Shown one piece after another: positions 34,384-53,527 of a stretch of 64,000 nt of DNA. The position numbers were made by a program, and so were the translations under genes. The DNA is taken from the sequence record NC_005260.1; one strand, given 5' to 3'. Positions within the stretch are counted from its first letter, which is position 1; every line of letters starts with the position of its first letter. The notes beneath the pieces are model-generated. The model saw nothing but the letters and a program-made list of their open reading frames with translations. It was not told the DNA's origin and did not search any database.

Positions 34384-34505
34384 TGGAGGGGAAGACGGGA
34401 CTCGAACCCGCGACCAACAGTTTGAATTTGCGTTTATTTGCGGTAAAGAATCTTAATCAGATTCCGCTTTGTGCGACTACTGCTCTACCACTGAGCTACT
34501 TCCCC
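34384..34505 (-). ncRNA. tRNA-shaped RNA with ~54-nt insert replacing the anticodon loop (GCAA-module RNA A)
   Basis: GGGGAAG/CTTCCCC-T-CCA acceptor, GCTC-AGTGGTA-GAGC D arm, GCGGG-TTCGAGT-CCCGT T arm; insert contains GAATCT/AGATTC hairpin then TTTACCGCAAAT. Confidence 0.8.
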
Positions 34506-34513
34506 AAATTTTT

Positions 34514-34649
34514 ACAACACTATGCTGGCGGTGCTGGAGTCGAACCAGCGTTACAGGCTTAACAGGCGAGTATTTATTGCAGGAATCATTCTTGACAGAA
34601 TGAATTTTACAGTGTCCTACCACTAGACGAACCGCCAGCATAATGTTGT
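34514..34649 (-). ncRNA. tRNA-shaped RNA with GCAA module in place of the anticodon arm, extended acceptor (RNA B)
   Basis: TGGCGGT/ACCGCCA plus ~12 extra bp, D arm GTCTAGTGGTAGGAC, T arm GCTGG-TTCGACT-CCAGC; TCATTCT/AGAATGA hairpin then TTCCTGCAAT. Confidence 0.8.
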
Positions 34650-34777
34650 TTGTTGTCGCGATACTGGATTCGAACCAGTGACGTTTCTCGATGTGCCCAC
34701 ACGCAACGGAATCGAACCGTTCTCGATACTTCCTCGGCTAGAGGACGTTCTCCCAACTGAACTAATCGCGACAACAA
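34650..34777 (-). ncRNA. tRNA-shaped RNA with two T-arms and a 5-nt anticodon-position loop
   Basis: AACGG-TTCGATT-CCGTT and ACTGG-TTCGAAT-CCAGT inside one TCGCGAT/ATCGCGA acceptor. Confidence 0.75.
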
Positions 34778-34791
34778 AACTATATTAACAC

Positions 34792-37260: not shown

Positions 37261-38697
37261 TTAGAAGTCGATACCGACGTAACGGTCGCTCATGATCTTG
37301 TCAAGCATGATTTGCATCGGGTTAAAGTCTTTCGCACTCAGGATTGTCTCCATGATTGCGGGACTGAAACCGGACACCAACGCAGTGCCTTGATCATCTT
37401 TGGTCACCGGATTGTTAGTCGGGCGCGGGCAAAGATTCCAGAATACCAGCTTCGGCATTTCGTAACCAGCATCGCGGTAAGTCTGACGAATCACCTCAAA
37501 GTTGGTACGTTCGCGATCACGCATACGATAGTATCCGCTGTAACCGCCGTCAGCGATGTTGAATTCCATGTCAGACAAGACGACCATCATAGTCGGCATA
37601 TCTTCTTGCGGAACTCGATTGCGTACAGCGCGATCAAGAATGATCTTGAATGCACCGGCAAAGTTGGTAGAGCCACCCCAAGGAGCGCGTCCCAGATGAT
37701 TCACCATGCTTTGCAGATCGTCGCCTTTCGCTTTGATGTTGTAGAACTGAGGATTATCATCGAAGGTAATCACTTCGTTCTTGAACACGCCACCAGAGCG
37801 TTCGCCGATATACAGACCCAGAGAAATCGCGATGTCCATAGCAGACAGACCAGCAACAGCAGTCGGAGTGCTCATAGAACCGGAAACGTCAACCATTGCG
37901 ATTACGTTTTCGGTAGAGCCAGCCATCCAGTCGCGTTGTGCTTTCCATTGCGCGTCAGCAGCAATAGAAGAACCGGTACGCATGGACTTGATCATGTCAT
38001 ACGGGTAAACTGCACCAGCGTTGATCTTAGCCTCGCCCTTTTTCAGAGACTCAAGGTAAGCAACATAACGCTCGTTCGCGTTTTTCAGGAATGCTTTCTG
38101 ATATCGAGCAGAAGCAACAGACGGCAGTTTACCGAACTCAATGCCATCCCACTGACGAGCACACATCTTTTGTTCAACGGTGTTCGACATACGGACGATA
38201 GTGTGACGGTATTCTTTGGCAGTCATCTGCATGGCTTTCGCTAGAATGCCAGCTTCTGAGCCTTTGCGCGGTGCCCACTTTGCAGCAAGACCGTTTTGCT
38301 TGGTCATGATTGCATCAACCATGATCGCAACAGCGGCGTCCTGAATCGGAGAGTTGAACATCGCTACCACATCTTTGAAGCGACCGATTTCAGGAGTGTT
38401 CATCAGAACAACGGTAGCATCAACCGGGTGACGGTGTGCAAGGACTTTCAGCAGGCGGATGAATTGTTCGCGTTCACCGGCACCACCGCGAATATCGCGA
38501 GCCCATTGCAGAATGCGAACAGCCCAGTCCGGAGACTCGGTATAAGCATCAACAAACATCTGAGTTAGATCTTTCCCGCGAGAGGAACCAATCTGAGAAA
38601 ACAGATTCAGACACTTGTCGCCAGTAGTGTAGTTAGTAACAGCACCGTTAGCAGTGCGGGCTTGAGCTTGTACCATTGCATTCATAAAAGTAGACAC
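37261..38697 (-). CDS. DUF2828-family TROVE/Ro60-like protein with vWA (MIDAS) domain
   Basis: TANGA, ARDIRGGAGER, AKWAPR, DVSGSMS, TFDDNP, WGGSTNF, LSDMEFN, FWNL; probable GTG start at 38697 with AGAGGT RBS. Confidence 0.85.
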   Translation of the reverse strand: MSTFMNAMVQAQARTANGAVTNYTTGDKCLNLFSQIGSSRGKDLTQMFVDAYTESPDWAVRILQWARDIRGGAGEREQFIRLLKVLAHRHPVDATVVLMNTPEIGRFKDVVAMFNSPIQDAAVAIMVDAIMTKQNGLAAKWAPRKGSEAGILAKAMQMTAKEYRHTIVRMSNTVEQKMCARQWDGIEFGKLPSVASARYQKAFLKNANERYVAYLESLKKGEAKINAGAVYPYDMIKSMRTGSSIAADAQWKAQRDWMAGSTENVIAMVDVSGSMSTPTAVAGLSAMDIAISLGLYIGERSGGVFKNEVITFDDNPQFYNIKAKGDDLQSMVNHLGRAPWGGSTNFAGAFKIILDRAVRNRVPQEDMPTMMVVLSDMEFNIADGGYSGYYRMRDRERTNFEVIRQTYRDAGYEMPKLVFWNLCPRPTNNPVTKDDQGTALVSGFSPAIMETILSAKDFNPMQIMLDKIMSDRYVGIDF

Positions 38698-38710
38698 AGA
38701 ATTACCTCTT

Positions 38711-39310
38711 TCAGGTTTGTTTGAATTTGTCCCAATCATAGGACAGTTTGTTTTTCCAGCACTTGCGGCAGAACGAGATATAACGTTGTTCAGCCCCAAT
38801 GCAAATTTGTTCACCGCGACGGATAACATTGCCGTTATCATCAACGCGAGCTACCATACAGGATTTTCTACCACAATCGCAGATACCAGACAGTTGTCGG
38901 ATTTCATCTGAGATCGAAAGCAATGCCCTAGAGCCGGGGAACAAGTTACCGAGAAAATCGGTACGCAGTCCGTAGCACATCACAGGGATATCCAGCTTGT
39001 CAACTACATCAGATAGTTCCCATACTTGTTTTTCAGTTAGGAACTGCGCTTCATCAACAAGAACACAGGCGATTTCGGACAGTTTACTCTCTTTTTCGAT
39101 CATTGTAAACATGTTTTCATTAACATGTACACATCGGCATTCACGCTGGATACCGATACGTGATCCAATCGTGCCTTCCGTTCTCGTGTCAAATGCTGGT
39201 TTGTACAACAGAACGTTTTGATTTCTCTCGTTGTAGTTGAAAGCCACTTGCAGTAATTGAGTGCTCTTTCCAACGTTCATCGAGGCATGGGTGAAAAATA
39301 ACTTAGCCAT
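38711..39310 (-). CDS. tk: thymidine kinase
   Basis: SMNVGKST, VLVDEAQFL, YGLRTDF, CDCGRK, YISFCRKC. Confidence 0.95.
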   Translation of the reverse strand: MAKLFFTHASMNVGKSTQLLQVAFNYNERNQNVLLYKPAFDTRTEGTIGSRIGIQRECRCVHVNENMFTMIEKESKLSEIACVLVDEAQFLTEKQVWELSDVVDKLDIPVMCYGLRTDFLGNLFPGSRALLSISDEIRQLSGICDCGRKSCMVARVDDNGNVIRRGEQICIGAEQRYISFCRKCWKNKLSYDWDKFKQT

Positions 39311-52631: not shown

Positions 52632-52720
52632 TGGTGCGAGTGGTGAGGATCGAACTCACATGGCGCGTTAGCACCGGCAAATTTTAAGTCTGCTGCCTAT
52701 ACCGATTCGGCTACACTCGC
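52632..52720 (-). tRNA. tRNA-Leu(TAA)
   Basis: GCAGA-CTTAAAA-TTTGC, long variable arm, CCA. Confidence 0.9.
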
Positions 52721-52725
52721 AATTC

Positions 52726-52810
52726 TGGTGGGAGTAGTGGGATTCGAACCCACACGACTATTGTCAACAAGGTTTGAGCTTGCCCTGTATGCCAGTTCCA
52801 GCATACTCCC
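52726..52810 (-). tRNA. tRNA-Leu(CAA)
   Basis: GCAAG-CTCAAAC-CTTGT, long variable arm, CCA. Confidence 0.9.
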
Positions 52811-52820
52811 AAAAATAATG

Positions 52821-52879
52821 CCAGTCCGGATCTCTTCTCGTATAAATTGGACTTTATGGGATTTGTCAGATCCGACTGG
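52821..52879 (-). ncRNA. candidate stem/large-loop RNA
   Basis: CCAGTC-GGATCT / AGATCC-G-GACTGG enclosing an A-rich loop. Confidence 0.5.
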
Positions 52880-52906
52880 ACTTTTTCTTTTGTGTAAAAC
52901 ACATTG

Positions 52907-53008
52907 TCCGGGTGGCGGGACTCGAACCCACAACCCACTGCTTCTTCTGTACTCTCGTTAGAAAGCACAGGAGAAGGCAGATGCGCTATCCTGTTGCGCC
53001 ACACCCGG
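52907..53008 (-). tRNA. tRNA-Arg(TCT)-like gene with a 28-nt insertion in the anticodon loop
   Basis: CCGGGTG/CACCCGG, GCGC D stem, CTGC-CTTCT[28 nt]AA-GCAG, T arm; no CCA, 7-bp acceptor extension. Confidence 0.7.
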
Positions 53009-53032
53009 ACAATGTGTTCTAATAGACTGGAA

Positions 53033-53527
53033 TCAAGGACTCCAGTCAAAATTTAAATCTTCCGTGTATTCTTCAAGTATACACAGCTTGTAATCGATTG
53101 TAAAGCTTTTTGGCAAAACAAAATCAGGACCAACATCATAACTAGCGGTAATGTGTGGATGATAGTCAGGATAATCATGAGTTGCCCCATGCTTTTCTCT
53201 GATCTCTTTGTGTCTAGCACCAAACCATGGGTCGGTCAACTTGAGCACAAGAGCACGTTTGCCGCTTTGAGTTTCAAAGATATCAGGTATCATGACTCCT
53301 TGCAACACTTTATCGATCTTACCGCTTGCTTGAAACTCAGGCAAGTATTTTCTTGAGTAGACCAACGTGGTATGCATTTTGTCATAGGGGACAAGATTAG
53401 GTATCCCCATTTCTCTGCATCTTCGAACAATTGCCATTGCAGTGCGCGGCTTATACCGTACTGCTACGTAAGTGCCGCGCGTGTCTTGCTTAGTCGCTTC
53501 TGTGAATTCAGAAAACGACTTTAACAT
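53033..53527 (-). CDS. 57B: gp57B, 2H phosphoesterase (anti-CBASS Acb1 family)
   Basis: GTYVAV, KMHTTLVYSR, HDYPDYHPHITASY; position next to 57A. Confidence 0.9.
   Translation of the reverse strand: MLKSFSEFTEATKQDTRGTYVAVRYKPRTAMAIVRRCREMGIPNLVPYDKMHTTLVYSRKYLPEFQASGKIDKVLQGVMIPDIFETQSGKRALVLKLTDPWFGARHKEIREKHGATHDYPDYHPHITASYDVGPDFVLPKSFTIDYKLCILEEYTEDLNFDWSP

Follow-up and report, generated by a model that had tools for sequence, protein, structure and literature searches.

The 23S rRNA genes of Salmonella and other bacteria contain intervening sequences that are excised by host RNase III. These are short hairpins at the tip of a helix in a stable bacterial RNA, and in this they resemble the insert in the tRNA-Arg gene of Aeromonas phage Aeh1 described here, the predicted geometry of which is that of an RNase III product; they differ in that the rRNA pieces stay unjoined and are nevertheless functional, whereas a tRNA cut in its anticodon loop needs to be rejoined. 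We know of no tRNA from which an intervening sequence is excised by RNase III. The protein-spliced introns of archaea and eukaryotes are similar to what is proposed here, since an endonuclease and a ligase, with no ribozyme involved, excise a short insert from the anticodon loop, but they usually lie at 37/38 and present 3-nt bulges 4 bp apart, whereas the Aeh1 insert lies at 36/37 in a continuous predicted helix; to our knowledge, bacteria and phages lack the splicing endonuclease of archaea and eukaryotes. Group I introns also interrupt bacterial tRNA genes in the anticodon loop, and the group I intron of the alphaproteobacterial tRNA-Arg(CCU) gene likewise follows the third anticodon base, but group I introns are at least 200 nt long and have a catalytic core, in contrast to the 25 to 31 nt of the present class. 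In the break-and-repair system of T4 (PrrC, Pnkp, and Rnl1), an anticodon-loop nick is resealed by phage Rnl1, a T4-type enzyme specialized for such nicks, and Aeh1 likewise encodes Pnkp and Rnl1; the T4 system mends a host tRNA-Lys cut by a host defense, whereas the break in Aeh1 would be a programmed step in the maturation of the phage's own tRNA.

Bacterial tRNA introns have been described as all self-splicing group I introns, with enzyme-spliced ones assigned to archaea and eukaryotes (PMC3400036), and all phage group I introns then known were in protein-coding genes (PMC3984707). The "enigmatic" introns in tRNAs of Lak megaphages (bioRxiv 10.1101/356790), for which neither a mechanism nor a common structure was given, are phage tRNA inserts other than group I introns, as is the insert in Aeh1; they differ in that they occur in Thr, Phe, Gly, and Tyr tRNAs, that at least one is long enough for a predicted tRNA, and that no junction rule was reported for them. 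A full-text literature search returned no description of the insert class presented here.

We analyzed a stretch of 64,000 nt of the Aeh1 genome (NC_005260.1), referred to as the window, in which a coordinate equals the record coordinate minus 62000. The Rfam tRNA model (RF00005) matched positions 52907 to 53008 on the minus strand with 49.8 bits (threshold, 29), leaving 31 nt in the anticodon loop unaligned. ARAGORN in its default mode, which has no intron search, skipped this gene and reported 23 other tRNAs for 18 amino acids, with only Arg and Val absent; the original Aeh1 genome paper has no Arg tRNA in its list (PMC1524935). AGA makes up 15 to 27% of the Arg codons in Aeh1 open reading frames (ORFs), with a peak in the block of late structural genes. 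The interrupted gene is named tRNA-Glu(UUC) in GenBank, its homologue is named a two-piece tRNA-Lys in the record of phage PX29, it is not annotated in the records of other relatives, and ARAGORN with intron search called it Leu(CAA). We rejected the Glu, Lys, and Leu names, which are mutually discordant and contradicted by the uninterrupted allele of phage phiAS5.

The gene spans tRNA positions 1 to 73 (52907 to 53008), with a cloverleaf kept by compensatory changes. Alignment with the phiAS5 allele delimits a 5' exon (52972 to 53008), which ends with the anticodon bases U34, C35, and U36 (52974 to 52972), and a 3' exon (52907 to 52943), which begins with A37 and A38. Between them lies an intervening hairpin of 28 nt (52944 to 52971), composed of an 11-nt 5' arm, a UAAC loop, and a 13-nt 3' arm with a terminal AG, and containing a 10-bp stem. 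On the minus strand the loop thus reads CTTCT, the 28 nt, and AA, and their removal is the unique single excision that yields the loop CTTCTAA. The whole anticodon arm has a predicted energy of -22.9 kcal/mol (z = -6.3 versus shuffles). The gene encodes no CCA, its trailer being CAA. A 12-bp inverted repeat flanks it (5' arm, 53009 to 53020; 3' arm, 52895 to 52906, both minus strand) and prolongs the acceptor stem to about 19 bp; nine phages share an identical copy of this repeat, in the more distant phage Ahp1_CNU-2021 both bases differ in 7 of the 12 pairs with pairing retained, and the repeat is absent in uncultured carriers. It may constitute a second double-strand processing site. A tentative promoter-like site detected by consensus scan only (TTTACA, 17 nt, TATACT; 53076 to 53104, minus strand) lies about 65 nt upstream from the gene, within the 3' end of gene 57B.

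Nine related Aeromonas phages have a homologue at the same locus, directly downstream of gene 57B. Four interrupted alleles were found among them, with inserts of 28 nt in Aeh1, Ah1, and avDM12-TAAL, 26 nt in PX29, AsFcp_1, and AsFcp_2, 28 nt in AsFcp_4, and 26 nt in phiWae14, and phiAS5 has an uninterrupted gene with the loop CTTCTAA. Ahp1_CNU-2021, whose Rnl1 is just 58% identical, has yet another variant, the fifth, with a 26-nt insert in the same position. The tRNA bodies of phiAS5 and PX29 are 91% identical, and in a MAFFT alignment the phiAS5 gap falls precisely between U36 and A37; a second, unrelated pair with and without the insert, viral contig L035 and the tRNA-Arg of cyanophage S-RIM8, gave the same 36/37 junction. 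Because the uninterrupted phiAS5 allele occupies the same locus, it fixes both identity and junctions, and on sequence comparison the Aeh1 gene is a tRNA-Arg(UCU) with an insert at 36/37. The D loop of the Aeh1 gene contains GGATA, and thus A20; all aligned alleles retain C35 and the D-loop sequence GGA-A that supplies A20. A20 and C35 are the main identity elements for arginyl-tRNA synthetase in Escherichia coli.

These results bear out most of a preliminary description made from the DNA alone, which had reported a 28-nt hairpin whose excision restores the CTTCTAA loop of an Arg UCU tRNA, had placed the insert at 36/37, had counted 23 other tRNAs for all amino acids except Arg and Val, so that the only Arg tRNA carries the insert, and had called for a comparison of relatives with and without it, which phiAS5 provided. 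The range it gave, 52901 to 53015, does contain the gene, but extends into the flanking inverted repeat. The description did not include the geometry of the junctions, the broad distribution of the insert, which extends to bacterial chromosomes, or the Acb1 identity of 57B, all described below.

The tRNA genes at 52632 to 53008 and at the corresponding loci of the relatives (L003 to L010) form a mosaic. Aeh1 and Ah1 share 96% of the insert plus anticodon stem and 67% of the tRNA body, and AsFcp_4 and Aeh1 share 92 to 99% of two Leu tRNAs while their Arg alleles are very different. The flanks are much better conserved than the tRNAs (the last 200 nt of 57B are 88 to 96% identical among relatives), and the tRNA-Arg alleles are discordant with phage relatedness based on Rnl1. 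A PHROG endonuclease ORF (E = 6.5e-13; L010:452-1192) adjoins the interrupted gene in phiWae14, an HNH endonuclease-like ORF (L346:4401-4973) adjoins it in contig L346, and the tRNA-Arg gene of a related phage contig carries a 571-nt insertion at its 3' end (window positions 52890 to 52933). An imperfect inverted repeat of 12 to 13 bp with a spacer of about 35 nt (52821 to 52833 and 52869 to 52880), partially conserved in relatives, lies between the Arg tRNA and tRNA-Leu(CAA). The adjoining endonuclease ORFs, the near-identical inserts in different bodies, and the discordant alleles together suggest that gene conversion, perhaps driven by homing endonucleases, shapes the spread of the insert in phages. 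A flank-based pattern for close relatives had no matches in JGI metagenomes, and IMG/VR contained four close relatives, all already known genomes.

Both the tRNA body and the insert are maintained by selection. Covariation was counted on a hand-drawn structure over an alignment of seven alleles, in which 96.2% of cells were paired and both partners differed in 25 of the 48 helix pairs; no shuffle out of 500 attained the observed pairing or compensatory values, and sliding the structure partners by 1 to 3 columns left 40 to 50% paired. Compensatory changes were present in the acceptor, D, anticodon, and T stems and affected 6 of the 10 insert-stem pairs, and pairing across alleles was 100% in the acceptor, D, and T stems; the first and the third-from-last insert bases, which pair with each other, had also undergone a compensatory change. 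The predicted rod was common to five anticodon arms (z-scores, -5 to -8).

The position of the junctions within this rod is the same in every allele. The minimum-energy folds have a bulge at C32, followed by the pairs U33-A38 and U34-A37, by C35 paired with the final G of the insert, and by U36 paired with the penultimate A, after which the helix runs on for about 10 bp to a loop of 3 to 8 nt, for a total rod length of 17 to 20 bp. These pairs of the anticodon bases U34, C35, and U36 were present in all 13 arms from phages and viral contigs, in three arms from genome bins, and in the real metagenome matches listed; in 11 of the 13 the 3' side of the insert exceeds the 5' side by 2 nt, and in the other 2 by 1 nt. 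The 5' junction follows the pair that contains U36 and the 3' junction precedes the pair that contains A37, an offset of two base pairs. Since the two junctions are thus offset within one helix, both products of cleavage would have 2-nt 3' overhangs, which are the signature of cuts by RNase III-family enzymes. The predicted folds accordingly combine a hairpin extension of about two helical turns with a 2-nt 3' offset. No 3-nt bulges were predicted, so the bulge-helix-bulge motif is absent, and the 5' end of the insert is unable to pair with the start of the 3' exon. We rejected a bulge-helix-bulge intron, since both junctions lie in a continuous helix in every minimum-energy fold and both pairs with and without the insert place it at 36/37 rather than at the canonical 37/38, and we rejected a group I intron, given the 28-nt length and the lack of an Rfam intron match even at E values up to 10.

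The insert class is widespread across unrelated phages, metagenomes, and some bacterial chromosomes. The scans fixed the last two anticodon-stem pairs and the T-loop sequence, so that the true distribution is wider than that sampled and the counts given here are not frequencies. A biased IMG/VR pattern (last two anticodon-stem pairs, CTTCT, 24 to 30 free bases, AGAA, and T loop) found at least 15 loci beyond the known genomes; 11 of those listed were real tRNA genes, with unrelated tRNA bodies and insert sequences. In a second IMG/VR scan, in which the terminal AG was not required, the insert in phage-like contigs began with C or T right after U36, and every insert directly following U36 ended in AG in the real tRNAs among the matches listed. 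Giant-virus-like contigs formed a separate class that serves as an internal contrast (L048, L049, L052, L056, L063, L066, L083, L084, L095, L111, L120, L126, and L146): here the insert follows A37 in eukaryote-type tRNA bodies, both tRNA-Arg(UCU) and, among the neighboring genes, tRNA-Ile(UAU) carry canonical 37/38 introns, and among the matches listed true 37/38 introns occurred only in such giant-virus-like, eukaryotic-type tRNAs.

A bacterial and archaeal scan with one genome per species yielded five real cases among the matches listed. In two Treponema bins the gene lies between V-ATPase subunit genes and the RelA/SpoT and FlaA genes, and on a 239-kb Chitinophagaceae contig it adjoins dehydrogenase and topoisomerase IB genes; these are cellular, chromosomal contexts. 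A metagenome scan added at least about 27 distinct inserts of 26 to 31 nt, the real ones listed sharing the fold, including two more Treponema-type genes that have different, compensating inserts and again adjoin V-ATPase subunit I. Several Treponema lineages have the insert. Overall, the inserts measure 25 to 31 nt and always end in AG among the real cases listed. The viral contigs L034 and L035 have an identical insert. No cultured relatives were found for three uncultured carriers, L035 matching just the 5' half of cyanophage tRNA-Arg genes. No shared protein, nuclease, or ligase gene was found across the groups of carrier contigs in the stretches compared, which argues for a common cellular enzyme.

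The other tRNAs on carrier contigs are uninterrupted, with the exception of a tRNA-Leu(UAA) on L174 (c[1978,2090]). This gene adjoins the interrupted tRNA-Arg and, compared with uninterrupted homologues on L034, L035, and L047, has a 24-nt insert between C32 and U33 that forms a weak hairpin (z = -1.6) of different geometry. An uncultured viral contig with 24 tRNAs, L046, contains both an uninterrupted and an interrupted tRNA-Arg(UCU) gene, 7 kb apart (c[4148,4220] and c[11459,11562]).

The Aeh1 window contains other unusual tRNA-like genes. Three of these lie in tandem at 34387 to 34780 on the minus strand, with large conserved inserts that replace the anticodon loop: gene A (about 34654 to 34772) has two T-arm-like hairpins, gene B is located at about 34512 to 34640, and gene C (34387 to 34505, 119 nt; Rfam, 53 bits) encodes CCA and is annotated as tRNA-Val. 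All three are 87% conserved across five relatives, and A and B have 8-bp acceptor extensions similar to the repeat that flanks tRNA-Arg. We rejected gene C as the missing Val tRNA, since no single excision gives a loop with U33 in six homologues. The region has a weak match to Y-RNA-like RNA (YrlA; 17.5 bits, E = 0.62). At 37261 to 38841 on the minus strand, a 526-amino-acid protein with DUF2828, DUF7788, and VWA domains (PHROG 850, "RNA-binding protein"; E = 3e-165) has a layout that recalls Ro60/TROVE proteins, which work with tRNA-like RNAs (PMC7824862). Given this layout, the protein may be a partner of the three tRNA-like genes about 2.5 kb away.

Gene 57B (53033 to 53527, minus strand), whose RefSeq name in Aeh1 and relatives is "RNA ligase," belongs to Pfam Acb1 (E = 1e-35), an anti-CBASS 2H phosphodiesterase; the misleading name derives from the 2H fold, and we rejected 57B as a splicing ligase. 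Genes for Rnl1, Pnkp, a split Rnl2, and a CCA-adding enzyme lie elsewhere in the Aeh1 genome, beyond the window. The Rnl1 protein combines Pfam RNA_lig_T4_1 with the tRNA-specific C-terminal domain T4_Rnl1_C (E = 1.6e-41) and Pnkp contains HAD_PNKP (E = 1.2e-48), and the T4-type repair gene set, Rnl1 with the tRNA-specific domain plus Pnkp in one genome, is thus present in Aeh1. Full-length Rnl1 was found in all 10 Aeromonas phages compared, nine of which have the insert. The RNA ligase 2 gene rnlB (record positions 166804 to 167830; L029:48405-49431) consists of two adjacent ORFs of 69 and 269 amino acids, both of which match the RNA ligase family, the short one weakly (E = 0.008). The earlier suggestion that Rnl or RtcB genes be sought was therefore answered in part, with Rnl1, split Rnl2, and also Pnkp found and no RtcB annotated in the parts of the Aeh1 record examined. 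Because Aeh1 has these ligase and kinase genes, the nuclease-plus-ligase route that had been put forward is a plausible candidate.

Removal of the insert from the RNA, by whatever route, is probable. The reading that we prefer, although it falls a little short of an even chance, is that the gene encodes a real tRNA-Arg(UCU) with a miniature intervening sequence that is removed by an RNase III-type double cut and sealing by an RNA ligase. In the precursor, the anticodon stem would continue past the bulged C32 into one long rod that contains the pairs of U33 through U36 described above, with the remainder of the insert folded into a roughly 10-bp stem and a small loop, so that both junctions lie in one helix. 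A host endonuclease of the RNase III type, specific for double strands, would then make both cuts, after which the tRNA body and the excised hairpin would each have a 2-nt 3' overhang; we infer this cleavage solely from the geometry of the junctions. The product would be a 7-nt anticodon loop with a nick bearing 3'-OH and 5'-phosphate ends, which an ATP-dependent RNA ligase could seal, the candidate in Aeh1 being its own Rnl1. Removal by this particular pair, a staggered double-strand cut followed by an RNA ligase (Rnl1 in Aeh1), is possible and still somewhat doubtful. Among the public sequencing runs searched there were only DNA contigs of relatives and no Aeh1 RNA.

Several observations weigh against the preferred reading. 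Common descent of all inserts, if real, could account for the terminal AG, and the interrupted copy on L046, which accompanies an uninterrupted tRNA-Arg(UCU), may have a non-decoding role. We know of no ATP-dependent RNA ligase in the bacterial carriers, and RtcB is unable to join RNase III ends. The main rival, splicing by other enzymes, would involve cyclic-phosphate chemistry, with the ends joined by RtcB in bacteria or by Pnkp and Rnl1 in T4-like phages. It fits the bacterial carriers better, as Treponema and Chitinophagaceae are, from general knowledge, likelier to have RtcB than an Rnl-type ligase, and it would explain why Aeh1 keeps a Pnkp that is needless for RNase III ends. In addition, bacterial RtcB is without a known tRNA-splicing substrate (PMC3400036). 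We nevertheless consider this rival unlikely: we know of no enzyme of such chemistry that cleaves the two strands of a continuous helix with a 2-nt 3' stagger, and no candidate nuclease gene is common to the carrier contigs in the stretches compared.

Rather improbable is a stable, unspliced tRNA-like RNA with a hidden anticodon, whose role would be that of a decoy, sponge, or regulator, directed for instance at a nuclease or at another factor that binds tRNA-Arg(UCU). Selection on the hairpin itself, the coexistence of both gene forms on L046, and the three other conserved tRNA-like genes of Aeh1, with elaborate inserts and unable to become tRNAs, are consistent with such a role, but the tRNA-Arg(UCU) gene of phiAS5 at the corresponding locus is a plain one, no allele has lost the anticodon loop letters, A20, or any part of the cloverleaf, Aeh1 has no other Arg tRNA while AGA is common in its genes, and the chromosomal Treponema copy resembles an ordinary housekeeping tRNA gene. 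The preliminary description had based a decoy on the tip of the 10-bp stem, which repeats TTCTAA; stem and tip are indeed present in Aeh1, but the tip, a loop of 3 to 8 nt, varies in sequence (TTCCAA in Ah1, TTTTAC in PX29), and we rejected it as a mimic of the anticodon loop. There is only a slim chance that the insert is primarily a selfish or protective DNA feature, which would disrupt a homing endonuclease target and be spread through gene conversion. The near-identical inserts in different bodies (Aeh1 and Ah1; L034 and L035), the alleles discordant with Rnl1, the endonuclease-like ORFs in phiWae14 and L346, and the 571-nt insertion would agree with this, whereas no endonuclease gene is annotated near the Aeh1 tRNA-Arg, the chromosomal Treponema copies have no endonuclease neighbor, and T4 SegB recognizes the T arm rather than the anticodon loop (PMC2330249); it would account for the origin of the insert, with removal at the RNA level still needed. 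A dead tRNA gene with a chance insertion is hardly credible: gene finders do skip the gene or disagree on its name, but the same architecture recurs in dozens of distinct sequences from unrelated genomes, and the compensatory changes throughout body and insert (25 of 48 pairs) exclude a decaying pseudogene and contradict the random decay in relatives that had been named as the sign of a pseudogene.

Our results describe an insert too short for a ribozyme, in a tRNA kept by selection, that recurs in cultured and uncultured phages and on bacterial chromosomes. We tentatively propose that it represents a third, protein-dependent kind of tRNA intron in bacteria and phages, a hairpin of about 27 nt at 36/37 of tRNA-Arg(UCU) that would be cut by RNase III and rejoined by an RNA ligase. 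Genes of this kind are now misnamed Glu, Lys, or Leu or are skipped, so that the tRNA sets of phages and bacteria are undercounted. Aeh1 and its host are culturable, which makes the question of splicing directly testable. If the insert is removed, bacteria possess a cut-and-rejoin route of tRNA splicing; this would account for the tuning of phage Rnl1 to anticodon loops and would provide a native splicing substrate for bacterial and phage RNA ligases.
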